Of a stretch of 64,000 nt of DNA, positions 1-11,319 are shown piece after piece. Every line of letters begins with the position of its first letter. Within the stretch, counting starts at the first letter, position 1. Both the position numbers and the translations under genes were made by a program. The notes below the pieces were generated by a model. It had not been told where the DNA came from. It was given only the letters and a program-made list of their open reading frames with translations, and searched no databases. This DNA is from Thalia democratica (taxonomy: Eukaryota), in NCBI GenBank assembly GCA_965202585.1, contig OZ241826.1, forward strand, positions 42,222,001-42,286,000, read 5' to 3'.

Positions 1-3000
1 AAACGTTTCTTAGGCTTTCTAGTTACTGAACATTTTGTTTTTTTTAGATAAAAACAAACTAAAAATACTTTTTTAAGACCTCAAAGTTCGGCTAAATTTC
101 TTCAAAAATTTTCTAAAGAAAAGTACATTAGTGTGACGATTGGACTATAATCGATATTAAACTTTATTTAAACTAACTAAAAAACATATAAAAACGTTTC
201 TTAGGCTTTCTAGTTACTGAACATTTTGTTTTTTTTAGATAAAAACAAATTAAAAATACTTTTTTAAGACCTCAAAGTTCGGCTAAATTTCTTCAAAAAT
301 TTTCTAAAGAAAAGTACATTAGTGTGACGATTGGACTATAATCGATATTAAACTTTATTTAAACTAACTAAAAAACATATAAAAACGTTTCTTAGGCTTT
401 CTAGTTACTGAACATTTTGTTTTTTTTAGATAAAAACAAATTAAAAATACTTTTTTAAGACCTCAAAGTTCGGCTAAATTTCTTCAAAAATTTTCTAAAG
501 AAAAGTACATTAGTGTGACGATTGGACTATAATCGATATTAAACTTTATTTAAACTAACTAAAAAACATATAAAAACGTTTCTTAGGCTTTCTAGTTACT
601 GAACATTTTGTTTTTTTTAGATAAAAACAAATTAAACATACTTTTTTAAGACCTCAAAGTTCGGCTAAATTTCTTCAAAAATTTTCTAAAGAAAAGTACA
701 TTAGTGTGACGAATGGACTATAATTGATATTAAACTTTATTTAAACTAACTAAAACACATATAAAAATGTTCCTTAGGCTTTTTAGTTACTGAACATTTT
801 GTTTGTTATAGATAAAAACAAATTAAACATACTTTTTTAAGACCTCAAAGTTCGGCTAAATTTCTTCAAAAATTTTCTAAAGAAAAGTACATTAGTGTGA
901 CGATTGGACTATAATCGATATTAAACTTTATTTAAACTAACTAAAAAACATATAAAAACGTTTCTTAGGCTTTCTAGTTACTGAACATTTTGTTTTTTTT
1001 AGATAAAAACAAATTAAAAATACTTTTTTAAGACCTCAAAGTTCGGCTAAATTTCTTCAAAAATTTTCTAAAGAAAAGTACATTAGTGTGACGATTGGAC
1101 TATAATCGATATTAAACTTTATTTAAACTAACTAAAAAACATATAAAAACGTTTCTTAGGCTTTCTAGTTACTGAACATTTTGTTTGTTATAGATAAAAA
1201 CAAATTAAACATACTTTTTTAAGACCTCAAAGTTCGGCTAAATTTCTTCAAAAATTTTCTAAAGAAAAGTACATTAGTGTGACGATTGGACTATAATCGA
1301 TATTAAACTTTATTTAAACTAACTAAAAAACATATAAAAACGTTTCTTAGGCTTTCTAGTTACTGAACATTTTGTTTTTTTTAGATAAAAACAAATTAAA
1401 AATACTTTTTTAAGACCTCAAAGTTCGGCTAAATTTCTTCAAAAATTTTCTAAAGAAAAGTACATTAGTGTGACGATTGGACTATAATCGATATTAAACT
1501 TTATTTAAACTAACTAAAAAACATATAAAAACGTTTCTTAGGCTTTCTAGTTACTGAACATTTTGTTTTTTTTAGATAAAAACAAATAAAACATACTTTT
1601 TTAAGACCTCAAAGTTCGGCTAAATTTCTTCAAAAATTTTCTAAAGAAAAGTACATTAGTGTGACGAATGGACTATAATTGATATTAAACTTTATTTAAA
1701 CTAACTAAAACACATATAAAAATGTTCCTTAGGCTTTTTAGTTACTGAACATTTTGTTTGTTATAGATAAAAACAAATTAAACATACTTTTTTAAGACCT
1801 CAAAGTTCGGCTAAATTTCTTCAAAAATTTTCTAAAGAAAAGTACATTAGTGTGACGATTGGACTATAATCGATATTAAACTTTATTTAAACTAACTAAA
1901 AAACATATAAAAACGTTTCTTAGGCTTTCTAGTTACTGAACATTTTGTTTTTTTTAGATAAAAACAAACTAAAAATACTTTTTTAAGACCTCAAAGTTCG
2001 GCTAAATTTCTTCAAAAATTTTCTAAAGAAAAGTACATTAGTGTGACGATTGGACTATAATCGATATTAAACTTTATTTAAACTAACTAAAAAACATATA
2101 AAAACGTTTCTTAGGCTTTCTAGTTACTGAACATTTTGTTTTTTTTAGATAAAAACAAATTAAAAATACTTTTTTAAGACCTCAAAGTTCGGCTAAATTT
2201 CTTCAAAAATTTTCTAAAGAAAAGTACATTAGTGTGACGATTGGACTATAATCGATATTAAACTTTATTTAAACTAACTAAAAAACATATAAAAACGTTT
2301 CTTAGGCTTTCTAGTTACTGAACATTTTGTTTTTTTTAGATAAAAACAAATTAAAAATACTTTTTTAAGACCTCAAAGTTCGGCTAAATTTCTTCAAAAA
2401 TTTTCTAAAGAAAAGTACATTAGTGTGACGATTGGACTATAATCGATATTAAACTTTATTTAAACTAACTAAAAAACATATAAAAACGTTTCTTAGGCTT
2501 TCTAGTTACTGAACATTTTGTTTTTTTTAGATAAAAACAAATTAAAAATACTTTTTTAAGACCTCAAAGTTCGGCTAAATTTCTTCAAAAATTTTCTAAA
2601 GAAAAGTACATTAGTGTGACGATTGGACTATAATCGATATTAAACTTTATTTAAACTAACTAAAAAACATATAAAAACGTTTCTTAGGCTTTCTAGTTAC
2701 TGAACATTTTGTTTTTTTTAGATAAAAACAAATTAAAAATACTTTTTTAAGACCTCAAAGTTCGGCTAAATTTCTTCAAAAATTTTCTAAAGAAAAGTAC
2801 ATTAGTGTGACGATTGGACTATAATCGATATTAAACTTTATTTAAACTAACTAAAAAACATATAAAAACGTTTCTTAGGCTTTCTAGTTACTGAACATTT
2901 TGTTTTTTTTAGATAAAAACAAATTAAACATACTTTTTTAAGACCTCAAAGTTCGGCTAAATTTCTTCAAAAATTTTCTAAAGAAAAGTACATTAGTGTG

Positions 3001-6000
3001 ACGAATGGACTATAATTGATATTAAACTTTATTTAAACTAACTAAAAAACATATAAAAACGTTTCTTAGGCTTTCTAGTTACTGAACATTTTGTTTTTTT
3101 TAGATAAAAACAAACTAAAAATACTTTTTTAAGACCTCAAAGTTCGGCTAAATTTCTTCAAAAATTTTCTAAAGAAAAGTACATTAGTGTGACGATTGGA
3201 CTATAATCGATATTAAACTTTATTTAAACTAACTAAAAAACATATAAAAACGTTTCTTAGGCTTTCTAGTTACTGAACATTTTGTTTTTTTTAGATAAAA
3301 ACAAATTAAAAATACTTTTTTAAGACCTCAAAGTTCGGCTAAATTTCTTCAAAAATTTTCTAAAGAAAAGTACATTAGTGTGACGATTGGACTATAATCG
3401 ATATTAAACTTTATTTAAACTAACTAAAAAACATATAAAAACGTTTCTTAGGCTTTCTAGTTACTGAACATTTTGTTTTTTTTAGATAAAAACAAATTAA
3501 AAATACTTTTTTAAGACCTCAAAGTTCGGCTAAATTTCTTCAAAAATTTTCTAAAGAAAAGTACATTAGTGTGACGATTGGACTATAATCGATATTAAAC
3601 TTTATTTAAACTAACTAAAAAACATATAAAAACGTTTCTTAGGCTTTCTAGTTACTGAACATTTTGTTTTTTTTAGATAAAAACAAACTAAAAATACTTT
3701 TTTAAGACCTCAAAGTTCGGCTAAATTTCTTCAAAAATTTTCTAAAGAAAAGTACATTAGTGTGACGATTGGACTATAATCGATATTAAACTTTATTTAA
3801 ACTAACTAAAAAACATATAAAAACGTTTCTTAGGCTTTCTAGTTACTGAACATTTTGTTTTTTTTAGATAAAAACAAATTAAAAATACTTTTTTAAGACC
3901 TCAAAGTTCGGCTAAATTTCTTCAAAAATTTTCTAAAGAAAAGTACATTAGTGTGACGATTGGACTATAATCGATATTAAACTTTATTTAAACTAACTAA
4001 AAAACATATAAAAACGTTTCTTAGGCTTTCTAGTTACTGAACATTTTGTTTTTTTTAGATAAAAACAAATTAAAAATACTTTTTTAAGACCTCAAAGTTC
4101 GGCTAAATTTCTTCAAAAATTTTCTAAAGAAAAGTACATTAGTGTGACGATTGGACTATAATCGATATTAAACTTTATTTAAACTAACTAAAAAACATAT
4201 AAAAACGTTTCTTAGGCTTTCTAGTTACTGAACATTTTGTTTTTTTTAGATAAAAACAAATTAAACATACTTTTTTAAGACCTCAAAGTTCGGCTAAATT
4301 TCTTCAAAAATTTTCTAAAGAAAAGTACATTAGTGTGACGAATGGACTATAATTGATATTAAACTTTATTTAAACTAACTAAAACACATATAAAAATGTT
4401 CCTTAGGCTTTTTAGTTACTGAACATTTTGTTTGTTATAGATAAAAACAAATTAAACATACTTTTTTAAGACCTCAAAGTTCGGCTAAATTTCTTCAAAA
4501 ATTTTCTAAAGAAAAGTACATTAGTGTGACGATTGGACTATAATCGATATTAAACTTTATTTAAACTAACTAAAAAACATATAAAAACGTTTCTTAGGCT
4601 TTCTAGTTACTGAACATTTTGTTTTTTTTAGATAAAAACAAATTAAAAATACTTTTTTAAGACCTCAAAGTTCGGCTAAATTTCTTCAAAAATTTTCTAA
4701 AGAAAAGTACATTAGTGTGACGATTGGACTATAATCGATATTAAACTTTATTTAAACTAACTAAAAAACATATAAAAACGTTTCTTAGGCTTTCTAGTTA
4801 CTGAACATTTTGTTTGTTATAGATAAAAACAAATTAAACATACTTTTTTAAGACCTCAAAGTTCGGCTAAATTTCTTCAAAAATTTTCTAAAGAAAAGTA
4901 CATTAGTGTGACGATTGGACTATAATCGATATTAAACTTTATTTAAACTAACTAAAAAACATATAAAAACGTTTCTTAGGCTTTCTAGTTACTGAACATT
5001 TTGTTTTTTTTAGATAAAAACAAATTAAAAATACTTTTTTAAGACCTCAAAGTTCGGCTAAATTTCTTCAAAAATTTTCTAAAGAAAAGTACATTAGTGT
5101 GACGATTGGACTATAATCGATATTAAACTTTATTTAAACTAACTAAAAAACATATAAAAACGTTTCTTAGGCTTTCTAGTTACTGAACATTTTGTTTTTT
5201 TTAGATAAAAACAAATTAAACATACTTTTTTAAGACCTCAAAGTTCGGCTAAATTTCTTCAAAAATTTTCTAAAGAAAAGTACATTAGTGTGACGAATGG
5301 ACTATAATTGATATTAAACTTTATTTAAACTAACTAAAACACATATAAAAATGTTCCTTAGGCTTTTTAGTTACTGAACATTTTGTTTGTTATAGATAAA
5401 AACAAATTAAACATACTTTTTTAAGACCTCAAAGTTCGGCTAAATTTCTTCAAAAATTTTCTAAAGAAAAGTACATTAGTGTGACGATTGGACTATAATC
5501 GATATTAAACTTTATTTAAACTAACTAAAAAACATATAAAAACGTTTCTTAGGCTTTCTAGTTACTGAACATTTTGTTTTTTTTAGATAAAAACAAACTA
5601 AAAATACTTTTTTAAGACCTCAAAGTTCGGCTAAATTTCTTCAAAAATTTTCTAAAGAAAAGTACATTAGTGTGACGATTGGACTATAATCGATATTAAA
5701 CTTTATTTAAACTAACTAAAAAACATATAAAAACGTTTCTTAGGCTTTCTAGTTACTGAACATTTTGTTTTTTTTAGATAAAAACAAATTAAAAATACTT
5801 TTTTAAGACCTCAAAGTTCGGCTAAATTTCTTCAAAAATTTTCTAAAGAAAAGTACATTAGTGTGACGATTGGACTATAATCGATATTAAACTTTATTTA
5901 AACTAACTAAAAAACATATAAAAACGTTTCTTAGGCTTTCTAGTTACTGAACATTTTGTTTTTTTTAGATAAAAACAAATTAAAAATACTTTTTTAAGAC

Positions 6001-8290
6001 CTCAAAGTTCGGCTAAATTTCTTCAAAAATTTTCTAAAGAAAAGTACATTAGTGTGACGATTGGACTATAATCGATATTAAACTTTATTTAAACTAACTA
6101 AAAAACATATAAAAACGTTTCTTAGGCTTTCTAGTTACTGAACATTTTGTTTTTTTTAGATAAAAACAAATTAAAAATACTTTTTTAAGACCTCAAAGTT
6201 CGGCTAAATTTCTTCAAAAATTTTCTAAAGAAAAGTACATTAGTGTGACGATTGGACTATAATCGATATTAAACTTTATTTAAACTAACTAAAAAACATA
6301 TAAAAACGTTTCTTAGGCTTTCTAGTTACTGAACATTTTGTTTTTTTTAGATAAAAACAAATTAAAAATACTTTTTTAAGACCTCAAAGTTCGGCTAAAT
6401 TTCTTCAAAAATTTTCTAAAGAAAAGTACATTAGTGTGACGATTGGACTATAATCGATATTAAACTTTATTTAAACTAACTAAAAAACATATAAAAACGT
6501 TTCTTAGGCTTTCTAGTTACTGAACATTTTGTTTTTTTTAGATAAAAACAAATTAAACATACTTTTTTAAGACCTCAAAGTTCGGCTAAATTTCTTCAAA
6601 AATTTTCTAAAGAAAAGTACATTAGTGTGACGAATGGACTATAATTGATATTAAACTTTATTTAAACTAACTAAAACACATATAAAAATGTTCCTTAGGC
6701 TTTTTAGTTACTGAACATTTTGTTTGTTATAGATAAAAACAAATTAAACATACTTTTTTAAGACCTCAAAGTTCGGCTAAATTTCTTCAAAAATTTTCTA
6801 AAGAAAAGTACATTAGTGTGACGATTGGACTATAATCGATATTAAACTTTATTTAAACTAACTAAAAAACATATAAAAACGTTTCTTAGGCTTTCTAGTT
6901 ACTGAACATTTTGTTTTTTTTAGATAAAAACAAATTAAAAATACTTTTTTAAGACCTCAAAGTTCGGCTAAATTTCTTCAAAAATTTTCTAAAGAAAAGT
7001 ACATTAGTGTGACGATTGGACTATAATCGATATTAAACTTTATTTAAACTAACTAAAAAACATATAAAAACGTTTCTTAGGCTTTCTAGTTACTGAACAT
7101 TTTGTTTTTTTTAGATAAAAACAAATTAAACATACTTTTTTAAGACCTCAAAGTTCGGCTAAATTTCTTCAAAAATTTTCTAAAGAAAAGTACATTAGTG
7201 TGACGAATGGACTATAATTGATATTAAACTTTATTTAAACTAACTAAAACACATATAAAAATGTTCCTTAGGCTTTTTAGTTACTGAACATTTTGTTTGT
7301 TATAGATAAAAACAAATTAAACATACTTTTTTAAGACCTCAAAGTTCGGCTAAATTTCTTCAAAAATTTTCTAAAGAAAAGTACATTAGTGTGACGATTG
7401 GACTATAATCGATATTAAACTTTATTTAAACTAACTAAAAAACATATAAAAACGTTTCTTAGGCTTTCTAGTTACTGAACATTTTGTTTTTTTTAGATAA
7501 AAACAAATTAAAAATACTTTTTTAAGACCTCAAAGTTCGGCTAAATTTCTTCAAAAATTTTCTAAAGAAAAGTACATTAGTGTGACGATTGGACTATAAT
7601 CGATATTAAACTTTATTTAAACTAACTAAAAAACATATAAAAACGTTTCTTAGGCTTTCTAGTTACTGAACATTTTGTTTTTTTTAGATAAAAACAAATT
7701 AAAAATACTTTTTTAAGACCTCAAAGTTCGGCTAAATTTCTTCAAAAATTTTCTAAAGAAAAGTACATTAGTGTGACGATTGGACTATAATCGATATTAA
7801 ACTTTATTTAAACTAACTAAAAAACATATAAAAACGTTTCTTAGGCTTTCTAGTTACTGAACATTTTGTTTTTTTTAGATAAAAACAAATTAAACATACT
7901 TTTTTAAGACCTCAAAGTTCGGCTAAATTTCTTCAAAAATTTTCTAAAGAAAAGTACATTAGTGTGACGAATGGACTATAATTGATATTAAACTTTATTT
8001 AAACTAACTAAAACACATATAAAAATGTTCCTTAGGCTTTTTAGTTACTGAACATTTTGTTTGTTATAGATAAAAACAAATTAAACATACTTTTTTAAGA
8101 CCTCAAAGTTCGGCTAAATTTCTTCAAAAATTTTCTAAAGAAAAGTACATTAGTGTGACGATTGGACTATAATCGATATTAAACTTTATTTAAACTAACT
8201 AAAAAACATATAAAAACGTTCCTTAGGCTTTCTAGTTACTGAACATTTTGTTTGTTTTAAATAAAAACAATTTAAACATACTTTTTTAAT
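1..8290 (+). repeat. 191-bp tandem satellite array, ~43 copies (open at the window's left edge)
   Basis: The marker aacgtttc recurs at a fixed 191-bp period (c at 4, 195, 386, 577). Monomers differ only at a few diagnostic sites. The array degenerates at ~8290. No unique spacers. Confidence 0.98.
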
Positions 8291-8360
8291 ATCAAAGTTT
8301 GATAACAATTTTTTAAGCATTTTTTCTTATCCAAAAGATATACAACTATGACGTACATTG

Positions 8361-9251
8361 TTAAGATAAATTTTTATTCAATAAGTCAAACAATAATACA
8401 CATACATTCAAAGTAAACACAAAAATAGAAAATAAATGTATTTTTAATCTTGGCATATCATATTTTTTTTCGACATTAAATTCTAAACCAAATGAGTTAG
8501 ACTTAGTTTCTGAGGCTTTTTTTTCAACAACTTTAACAAATGCAGATGGCTTATCTACAACTTTACAACATTTAGTGCTTACAATATTAGAACTTTTATG
8601 TACAACTAACTTACTATTACCATTAGAATAAAAACTTGCATTATCAACGAACTCATCATCAGAGCTATCTAAATTAGGCCTTTTAACTTTTGAACATAAA
8701 CTGTTGTTATCAACAAATTTTCTTTTTCTACTAATATTACTTTCATCTTTACTTTTTACAATATGAGAGGCTGAGCTAGATGGTATATTAGCTCCTGTAA
8801 ACATTTAAAACTAAGAACAACTACAACTATGAAAAAAGCAAAATAAACTTATCTTCACAAAACAAAAACTTTGAAACAAAAGTATTATAAAACGACAAAA
8901 AATGGTACTAAAAATATTTTAATTTAACAAATACTGTTAAAAACAAAAACTGTACTATATAAATTAAAAAAACCATTAAAAATAGAAATAAAGAAGTAAA
9001 AAACCTTTTAAAACCGTCTCATACATCTCTTGAATGCCATTACTGTTATTTAGCCAAGCTCTTCTAACCATCTGTATATCTTTAAACTGTACATTTGCTG
9101 CCTTACAGTTTTTGTATTTCTCGACTACCTTCTTACAGGCTTCCCTCTGATTAGTTGCAAAAATAACTTTGAAATTAATACTATGCATAATATTTACAAG
9201 CTTTTTTGTGTCTTTAAAAAGACATAAAGCAGTTTTTCGTTTCACCATCAT
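8361..9251 (-). CDS. Putative two-exon orphan gene between the inverted satellite arms (exons 9251-9005 and 8794-8361; ~226 aa, 3' end uncertain)
   Basis: ORFs 8976-9251 and 8361-8804 join in frame (phase 1) via donor AAAG|GTTTTT (9005/9004) and acceptor TTTACAG|GA (8795/8794) across a 210-bp very T-rich intron. The product has basic RKRK/KRP and acidic DSSDDE patches. No family recognised. Confidence 0.4.
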
Positions 9252-9379
9252 GAAAGTTTCAATAGTTCACTAGAAGTTTCAGTGTATACTAAACTTTATC
9301 TTTAGCCTAGACAAAACCGCGCGAAAAGGTGTAGTGTTTCTAAATTTATATCTTAAATTGAAGTTTCAGGAACAGAAAT

Positions 9380-10328
9380 TACTTTTCTTTAGAAAATTTT
9401 TGAAGAAATTTAGCCGAACTTTGAGGTCTTAAAAAAGTATGTTTAATTTGTTTTTATCTAAAACAAACAAAATGTTCAGTAACTAAAAAGCCTAAGGAAC
9501 GTTTTTATATGTGTTTTAGTTAGTTTAAATAAAGTTTAATATCAATTATAGTCCAATCGTCACACTAATGTACTTTTCTTTAGAAAATTTTTGAAGAAAT
9601 TTAGCCGAACTTTGAGGTCTTAAAAAAGTATGTTTAATTTGTTTTTATCTGAAACAAACAAAATGTTCAGTAACTAGAAAGCCTAAGGAACGTTTTTATA
9701 TGTTTTTTAGCTAGTTTAAATAAAGTTTAATATCAATTATAGTCCAATCGTCACACTAATGTACTTTTCTTTAGAAAATTTTCGAAGAAATTTAGCCGAA
9801 CTTTAAGGTCTTAAAAAAGTATGTTTAATTTGTTTTTATCTGAAACAAACAAAATGTTCAGTAACTAGAAAGCCTAAGGAACGTTTTTATATGTTTTTTA
9901 GCTAGTTTAAATAAAGTTTAATATCAATTATAGTCCAATCGTCACACTAATGTACTTTTCTTTAGAAAATTTTTGAAGAAATTTAGCCGAACTTTGAGGT
10001 CTTAAAAAAGTATGTTTAATTTGTTTTTATCTAAAACAAACAAAATGTTCAGTAACTAGAAAGTCTAAGGAACGTTTTTATATGTTTTTTAGCTAGTTTA
10101 AATAAAGTTTAATATAAATTATAGTCCAATCGTCACACTAATGTACTTTTCTTTAGAAAATTTTTGAAGAAATTTAGCCGAACTTTGAGGTCTTAAAAAA
10201 GTATGTTTAATTTGTTTTTATCTGAAACAAACAAAATGTTCAGTAACTACAAAGTCTAAGGAACGTTTTTATATGTTTTTTAGCTAGTTTAAATAAAGTT
10301 TAATATCAATTATAGTCCAATCGTCACA
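9380..10328 (-). repeat. ~5 inverted copies of the same 191-bp satellite monomer
   Basis: Reverse complement of the left-array monomer. tacttttc recurs at 9380, 9571, 9762, 9953 and 10144 (period 191). Ends at ...tcgtcaca (10328). Confidence 0.97.
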
Positions 10329-10520
10329 TGCGTGTACTAGAAAGTAATTTGCAAAATATTAGCCTATTTTAGTAGCATAATTACTCATGCGGAACATTAG
10401 ATGTTCGATTTTGCATAATCTTAGCCTAGAAATCTTAGCCCAAACAGATCGCAATCAATATTGACCATGTAAGCATAGTCTACAAGTTTTATATTTCATT
10501 GCATTTTTTAGGTTTACTCA

Positions 10521-11319
10521 TGTAGAGAGGCAACAAGAACAATGTGAATGCACATCAGGGTTTCCCAAAGTGGGCCATGACAGATATTCAGCAAGCCATG
10601 AGCAGCAGAGGGGCCAAAGGGGGGACATATGCAGTTAAGGAGGCCACAGGGGTCATGAGGTCATAATTTGAAACTTACAAAAGATATTCTGGAGTTGTTG
10701 ATGAAGAGCAAAACAAAAAGGTCTTAGGTGTTTTAAATGGTAGTTTTAAAATTTACACTAGATATTCTGGAGTTGTTGTTAGAAAGGAAAAAAAAAAAGT
10801 ATTTAGGTGCTTTTAATAGTATTTTTTTGAGTAATCTTGTTGAAGAGGGCTAAAGCTTTTTTAATTTCTTTAAAGTTGGCCATTTGAAAATTGATTGGGA
10901 AACCCTGACGTACATGATCATAAAAGTCAAAATCTTTGGGAGGAGGCGGTGTGGTGCCCATAGTAGACTATGTTTTCATAGTTAATATTGGCAGTAATTG
11001 GTTTAAAAAAAGTACATACCATTTTTTTTTGTAGAATTAATATTTTTTGTTTAATTAAAGTAATAAAAAACAAAATTCATTTATATTAATGTTAAAGTTA
11101 AATTTTATTTAAGTTCAAATAAAAACTTACTAAAGTTATTTACAAAATATATGGTGTAGGGATCAATGATCAAAATGTCTTTCTTCACACCATTCATCCA
11201 TTGACCGAAGTTGTTCACATTTTTCTTTCTTTCTACCATTTGCTCCATTTTGTCCCCTCCCTTATATTTAGATTTTAGTGATCATTTACATTCACATTTT
11301 TCTTGTTGCCCTTTCTACA
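10521..11319. mobile_element. Older inverted-repeat element interrupted by the hAT MITE
   Basis: The left arm tgtagagaggcaacaagaacaatgtgaatgcacat[MITE]gatcataaaagtc...gggagg matches the reverse complement of 11254-11319 once the MITE is removed. Confidence 0.5.
10556..10907 (+). mobile_element. hAT-type MITE (non-autonomous), copy 1
   Basis: 13-bp perfect TIR cagggtttcccaa...ttgggaaaccctg. Flanking 8-mers atgcacat/acgtacat (6/8) fit a decayed 8-bp TSD. Internal sequence is homologous to the copy at 21866-22098. Confidence 0.75.

Follow-up and report, generated by a model that had tools for sequence, protein, structure and literature searches.

Organization of the locus

The 64,000-nucleotide stretch of the Thalia democratica genome analysed here (contig OZ241826.1, positions 42,222,001 to 42,286,000; in what follows, the window) opens inside a transposable element whose arms are inverted arrays of one tandem repeat. 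The 191-bp array with which the window begins, a core of 1.08 kb and the five inverted monomers beyond it are parts of a single insertion of 12,743 bp, which runs from C1:42219713 to window position 10455. We read this insertion as one copy of a family of foldback-type DNA transposons, a copy that has lost internal sequence and is non-autonomous; the family most likely belongs to Mutator and is closest in design to Rehavkus (probability about 0.85).

The initial annotation of the window had described an array of more than 8 kb, a spacer of about 1.1 kb and about five monomers in inverted orientation, a picture with which both Tandem Repeats Finder and mapping of the monomer by BLAST agree. The former program places the 191-bp unit at 1-8289 (43.4 copies, 98% matches) and its reverse complement at 9380-10328 (5.0 copies, 98% matches), in AT-rich DNA of 23-28% G+C. 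For the mapping, the monomer was taken in the phase starting TGTGACGA and searched over the window together with the 10 kb upstream of it (C1:42212001-42222000). The long, or A-side, arm lies on the plus strand and fills positions 1-8299, but the array does not end at the window start, as it had seemed to; it runs 2,160 bp further upstream and begins at C1:42219840. Between window coordinates -2160 and 8299 it keeps an exact 191-bp spacing with no indels and comprises 54 complete monomers plus a 148-bp one next to the core, 10,460 bp or 54.8 monomers in all. The short, or B-side, arm (9380-10328, minus strand) is inverted relative to the long one and has four complete monomers and, adjoining the core, one that is 185 bp long (4.97 monomers). 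Chance is excluded, because the repeats are 96-100% identical and the same structure recurs elsewhere in the genome.

The element had been taken to end with the last monomer, at 10328. The two arms do share their outer phase (TGTGACGA), but on each side a further 127 bp separate the last monomer from the true terminus and the duplication. The sequence directly outside both arms is itself an inverted repeat, 127 bp of unique sequence starting ATTGCGATCTG, and its left copy (C1:42219713-42219839) and right copy (10329-10455, minus strand, ending ...CAGATCGCAAT) differ at 1 of 127 positions. Comparison of the window copy with five other copies fixed the common terminus as 5'-ATTGCGATCTGTTTGGGCTAAG... 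A perfect 10-bp target-site duplication, CAATATTGAC, flanks the insertion at C1:42219703-42219712 on the left and at 10456-10465 on the right. An empty site exists as a paralogue: the flank of another family copy, near C1:36 Mb, holds an uninterrupted version of the window insertion site with a single CAGTATTGAC.

Every monomer contains the hexamer GGCTAA once, and one strand of the 127-bp outer repeat contains it three times; elsewhere in the window its frequency is about 0.1 per kb, and from this distribution it would be a candidate for a repeated binding motif.

The family across the genome

About 40 copies of this foldback family are present in the T. democratica genome. A 27-mer from the terminus occurs 79 times genome-wide with up to three mismatches (39 forward and 40 reverse, with none for the reversed control), and these termini form about 21 convergent pairs, 0.6-12.7 kb apart, of which the window copy is the longest. 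In 35 of the 79 occurrences the terminus is perfect, though the arms of the older subfamilies are only 72-82% identical to the window monomer; so many perfect termini despite diverged arms fit a functional constraint on the terminus. The core, which gives 31 genomic matches, consists of two pieces that behave separately, A (window 8300-8458) and B (window 8459-9379). In every copy examined, inverted monomers flank the core pieces, and the inner boundaries are constant: the innermost monomer always measures 148 bp in the A-side arm and 185 bp in the B-side arm. The arm layout is the same in six other copies, and the number of monomers per arm ranges from 3 to 25 outside the window (3 to 55 with the window copy included).

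All eight insertions examined have this architecture together with a 9-10 bp duplication of their own. Besides the window copy, the duplications are ATATTTCTGG at C6:44.60 Mb, GTAACATGCA at C7:19.16 Mb, CCCATCAACT at C8:39.97 Mb, CAATTATGGC at C2:48.74 Mb, CATGGTAGAC at C1:36.07 Mb, GTTTAGACCA at C5:57.94 Mb and TCATCAGCC at C8:38.52 Mb; the last is 9 bp long and the other seven are 10 bp. Looked at in isolation, the window might be taken for a satellite array with a local inversion at its edge and ordinary unique DNA as its core, with no mobile element involved. Beyond that appearance nothing speaks for such a reading, and we give it a negligible probability in view of a core that recurs in multiple copies, each time enclosed by inverted arms whose inner boundaries are fixed, a terminus common to all copies, a different 9-10 bp duplication at each copy and the paralogous empty site. 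Neither a single-copy spacer, nor arms lacking a shared terminus or duplication, nor a simple local inversion, each of which would have counted against a transposon, was found when these were looked for. A foldback-type cut-and-paste transposon, which the initial annotation had proposed by comparison with FB-NOF, is therefore virtually certain from the shared termini, the individual duplications and the multi-copy core between inverted arms.

Two copies have a more complex structure. At C5:57939757-57951765 two elements of the family stand head to head, their termini 3 bp apart (gta), and the 10-bp GTTTAGACCA matches at the outermost ends only, as if the pair were a composite that had been inserted as one unit or rearranged internally. 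The copy at C1:36066421-36076363 is the sole long copy with young-type monomers and a young-type piece B, and is chimeric. On the B side, the old subfamily type is seen in three outer monomers and in the outer repeat, which is 86.6% identical to that of the window copy; the A-side end is young-type (96.9%), and the 10-bp duplication is still perfect.

The core and its gene

Full-length-type cores of 6.1-6.3 kb are found in three copies, at C1:36.068 Mb, C8:38.518 Mb and C5:57.942 Mb, with a mutual identity of 94-98%. Deletions in the other copies were mapped against the core of the C1:36 Mb copy, in the coordinates of locus L054. The window copy lacks 4810-9828 (5.0 kb), the copies at C7:19.16 Mb and C8:39.97 Mb both lack 4932-9104, the copy at C2:48.74 Mb lacks 5947-8871, and the copy at C6:44.60 Mb keeps 3885-5688 only. 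Since the C7:19.16 Mb and C8:39.97 Mb copies have an identical deletion but different target-site duplications, the deleted derivative itself has transposed, which points to mobilisation in trans.

The open reading frames on which the initial annotation based a gene-bearing core are real, but they belong to a deletion remnant and not to a working gene. They represent two exons, spliced together, of a single minus-strand gene. Exon 1 (9251-9005; MMVKRK...ETVLK) has no significant Pfam match and is separated from exon 2, which starts at 8794, by a phase-1 GT-AG intron read from the sequence (9004-8795). The 5.0-kb deletion cuts exon 2 at 8459, so that only 8794-8459 remains, and beyond the junction at 8458/8459 the reading frame continues out of frame into piece A. 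The latter (8300-8458, minus strand) represents the last 159 bp of the full-length core and starts about 12 nt before the stop codon of what, in the full-length copies, is a PHD-finger exon. The upstream part of piece B (9252-9379, minus strand) is presumably promoter or 5'-untranslated sequence. No intact gene is present in the window core, which holds exon 1, part of exon 2 and the last 159 bp.

Over most of the region, the stop-free pieces of the gene strand have stayed free of stops in all three long copies, and the exon frames are conserved. A PHD finger makes up the last exon piece (PF00628 in Pfam, with 31.1 bits at a cut-off of 24 and E=2.4e-7; L054:9703-9840), and its first Cys pair sits on the preceding exon; it is the sole Pfam match among 18 exon pieces, with no transposase family detected. 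The pieces upstream carry, in order, LHIDSTVGFF, VECDCS, HICGAHVMH and NNQAVEVLFSYFK, all kept in the three copies and in 18 database fragments, with no significant alignment to any reference. The four motifs may correspond to the D, D, C-x2-H and E expected in a DDE transposase and would then include its putative catalytic residues; the last of them has an N and a K that hardly vary in the alignment with the 18 database fragments. A profile of the putative catalytic-E exon found nothing among PDB sequences. An Ulp1 protease, which an HW...ND motif had suggested, was rejected, there being no Peptidase_C48 domain (PF02902) in the exon pieces; none of the 102 genomic PF02902 matches (E<=1) lies inside the three long copies.

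The exon with the C-x2-H motif has 92 matches in the genome, down to about 31% identity. One of them, 35% identical (C8:20945057-20945263), lies inside an open frame of 1324 amino acids without stops, which may be an intron-less full-length relative of the same transposase clade.

The cores of the long copies diverge unevenly between the subfamilies. When the L054 core (3884-9991) is compared with those at C8:38.518 Mb and C5:57.942 Mb, identity is 94-100% over the central 4.5 kb, in introns as well as exons, as against 85-89% at the ends of the core and only 72-82% in the arms. Such a conserved centre between diverged ends suggests either recombination between subfamilies or a much faster turnover of the ends.

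Affiliation of the family

An affiliation with Mutator, and with Rehavkus in particular, would be our preferred placement, at somewhat better than even odds on the sequence features available. Mutator-like elements (MULEs) typically have terminal inverted repeats of over 100 bp and target-site duplications of 8-10 bp (PMC5225508); here the duplications are 9-10 bp and the outer repeat alone, not counting the arms, measures 127 bp. Rehavkus is a MULE-related group listed in Repbase and found in arthropod and annelid hosts; it serves as an outgroup in MULE phylogenies and is characterised by a PHD finger, a minisatellite and duplications of 9 bp (Dupeyron et al. 2019, PMC6446971; PMC13359780). 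The PHD finger, subterminal tandem repeats of variable number and long inverted termini are all present in the Thalia family. As a lead only, the language-model Atlas places the C-x2-H exon beside MULE, FAR1, SWIM and Transposase_mut clusters (0.92 for the best MULE-bearing cluster) and the E exon beside clusters of the same kinds, at 0.84-0.87.

Several observations weigh against this placement. The duplication is mostly 10 bp (seven of eight insertions, with 9 bp in one), where that of Rehavkus is 9 bp. The Pfam MULE model PF10551 matches no transposase exon at E<=1, and the 74 places in the genome that PF10551 does match all lie outside the family and apart from the 92 that match the C-x2-H exon; with no overlap between the two sets, the clade is invisible to the MULE model. 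Full-length homologues were likewise missing. A HMMER search with the 122-aa putative catalytic-E exon against 1.84 billion representatives returned only 21 unannotated fragments of 46-201 aa, ten of which were scanned with Pfam and gave no significant match, and a word-based protein search with the C-x2-H exon gave no candidate. Finally, the E-x-x-F-S around the putative catalytic glutamate is a motif that we take to look as much like hAT as like MULE.

The transposase of the same foldback transposon might instead belong to another DDE superfamily with a C-x2-H motif, hAT-like or P/Galileo-like, or to an undescribed one. The failure of the MULE model on every exon, the separateness of the 92 and 74 matches and the presumed hAT character of E-x-x-F-S would all be accounted for in this way, and Galileo shows that a foldback architecture arose in the P superfamily too. 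Target-site duplications, however, are 8 bp in hAT and 7-8 bp in P elements, and the 9-10 bp found in eight of eight insertions fit Mutator and neither of these. Pfam scans of the exon pieces revealed no hAT dimerisation or THAP domain, nor any hAT family, and the Atlas neighbours of the two exons are MULE, FAR1 and SWIM, with no hAT among them. The combination of a PHD finger with a subterminal minisatellite is, moreover, the published description of Rehavkus (PMC6446971). We consider an origin of the transposase outside Mutator unlikely, and keep to the Mutator/Rehavkus-like placement in what follows.

Growth of the long arm

The 54 full monomers of the long arm represent only nine sequence variants, with 27, 7, 7, 7 and 2 members and four singletons. 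Monomers set 19 places apart are 0.994 identical, and the order of variants in monomers 10-28 (window -441 to 3187) is repeated, with two changes, in monomers 29-47 (3188-6816), a 3.6-kb duplication. A dimer motif of variants ('2 3') recurs in the arm, and the outermost monomers are distinct. Within the long arm the mean identity is 0.985. Its monomers are less like those in the short arm of this element (0.961), in the arms of its closest sister copies (0.945-0.964) and in the more diverged copy at C1:36 Mb (0.92-0.93). Among the nine variants, eight differ from one another by 1-6 substitutions and from any monomer elsewhere by at least 3. The small number of variants and the 19-monomer duplication indicate that the long arm grew by local amplification, probably after the lineage of the window copy had split from the others.

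The length of this arm comes from the genome assembly only, which is a further point against our account of the copy. Near-identical tandem monomers are hard to assemble, and in a real element the 10.5-kb arm could have been over-extended by the assembler from a true length like that of the other copies, with their 3-25 monomers. The pattern of variants, on the other hand, is ordered and non-random: a block of 19 monomers recurs with two of its variants changed, and the outermost monomers are distinct. The 191-bp spacing is exact throughout the arm, with no indels, and the family as a whole varies in arm length, the other copies having 3-25 monomers. An assembly artefact is improbable on these grounds.

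The initial annotation had the left arm expanded into a satellite. Expanded into an array it is, but the word satellite is generous for a monomer of which a diagnostic 27-mer (up to two mismatches) occurs only 155 times genome-wide, 59 of them (38%) in the window element. Among the matches listed (100 of the 155), all lie inside copies of the element and none forms an independent monomer array. The window locus is the largest array of the 191-bp monomer in the genome. With 38% of all such monomers concentrated in one arm, and no sign of a dispersed satellite, it represents an incipient array that is not yet a satellite.

These observations are best explained as follows. On the plan of the family, each end consists, going inward, of the 127-bp outer terminal inverted repeat and a variable number of roughly 191-bp monomers with fixed inner boundaries, and then the core; the full-length cores, of 6.1 kb, would encode a spliced DDE-type transposase ending in the PHD finger. 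The window copy, with 5.0 kb of its core gone, would have had to be moved in trans by the transposase of a full-length copy, an enzyme that would recognise the conserved terminus and probably also repeated sites in the arms, GGCTAA being the candidate. The arm on the 3' side of the gene grew to 54.8 monomers through repeated local duplications of several monomers at a time, for which unequal exchange, slippage and template switching during repair are the candidate mechanisms.

Neighbouring repeats

No additional pieces of the element are present elsewhere in the window. To the right of the insertion, window 10550-10900 belongs to a high-copy dispersed repeat (4,560 first-look candidates genome-wide, at 77-86% identity), and the element is thus inserted beside another repeat. 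About 11 kb upstream of the element, at C1:42203335-42208675, there is a second tandem array, with a period of 190 bp (28 copies, 89% matches); its sequence is unrelated to that of the 191-bp monomer, and it may represent an arm of another repeat family.

Significance

The locus offers a well-bounded natural case of a transposon arm turning into a long tandem array, in which the termini, the target-site duplication, the sister copies with 3-25 monomers and the history of internal duplication can all be read. Knowledge of how such elements work is not changed by it. On the placement preferred here, foldback elements of Mutator/Rehavkus design would be extended to a tunicate genome, and because the transposase clade is not caught by the Pfam MULE model, annotation of the T. 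democratica genome would miss it. More tentatively, and with odds that we put below even, the family may be a Rehavkus-like DDE-PHD lineage of chordates, in a thaliacean-type tunicate and outside the published arthropod and annelid range, and so divergent that not one of its 90 or more relatives in the genome is matched by the Pfam MULE model. In that event the window would capture the earliest stage in the birth of a satellite from a transposon arm, at which one arm holds over a third of all monomers of its type.

Comparison with known systems

A text search of the literature found no paper combining foldback, tunicate and transposon, and the parallels available come from other hosts. The nearest is Rehavkus of Tribolium (Rehavkus-1_TC and -3_TC), the arms of which hold 2-12 or up to 50 monomers and one repeat of which has expanded to an 80.5-kb satellite array (Genome Res 2025, PMC12581902; preprint 10.1101/2024.12.02.626372). 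The duplications are 9-10 bp here, mostly 10 bp, and 9 bp there, and in both cases the number of repeats varies between copies. The host differs, a tunicate here as against the published arthropods and annelids (PMC6446971), and in the Thalia family monomers occupy both arms behind a unique outer repeat of 127 bp, a comparison made from the published description of Rehavkus.

Among mosquito MULEs, Muta1 has been called a 'type 2 foldback' element, with a DDE transposase, cut-and-paste movement and duplications of 8-9 bp (Liu and Wessler 2017, PMC5225508). These elements share with the present family long terminal inverted repeats with a terminal motif and subterminal tandem repeats, as well as non-autonomous derivatives that vary in repeat number (PMC5225508). 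The repeats of Muta1, however, are 12-15 bp long within a 145-bp terminal inverted repeat, where those of the Thalia element are units of 191 bp in arms of kilobases, and its transposase matches MULE models and is without a PHD finger.

With FB/FB-NOF and Tetris of Drosophila the family has in common inverted arms of tandem repeats, a core that is often deleted and variable arm length (PMC4079207), a likeness of architecture; it differs from both in its very regular 191-bp monomers and its termini of unique sequence. The arm repeats of Tetris in D. virilis supplied an emerging satellite (Dias et al. 2014, PMC4079207), while no independent satellite arrays of the Thalia monomer occur among the matches listed. 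The window element is, in this company, a new example of an already known route by which mobile elements seed satellite DNA.

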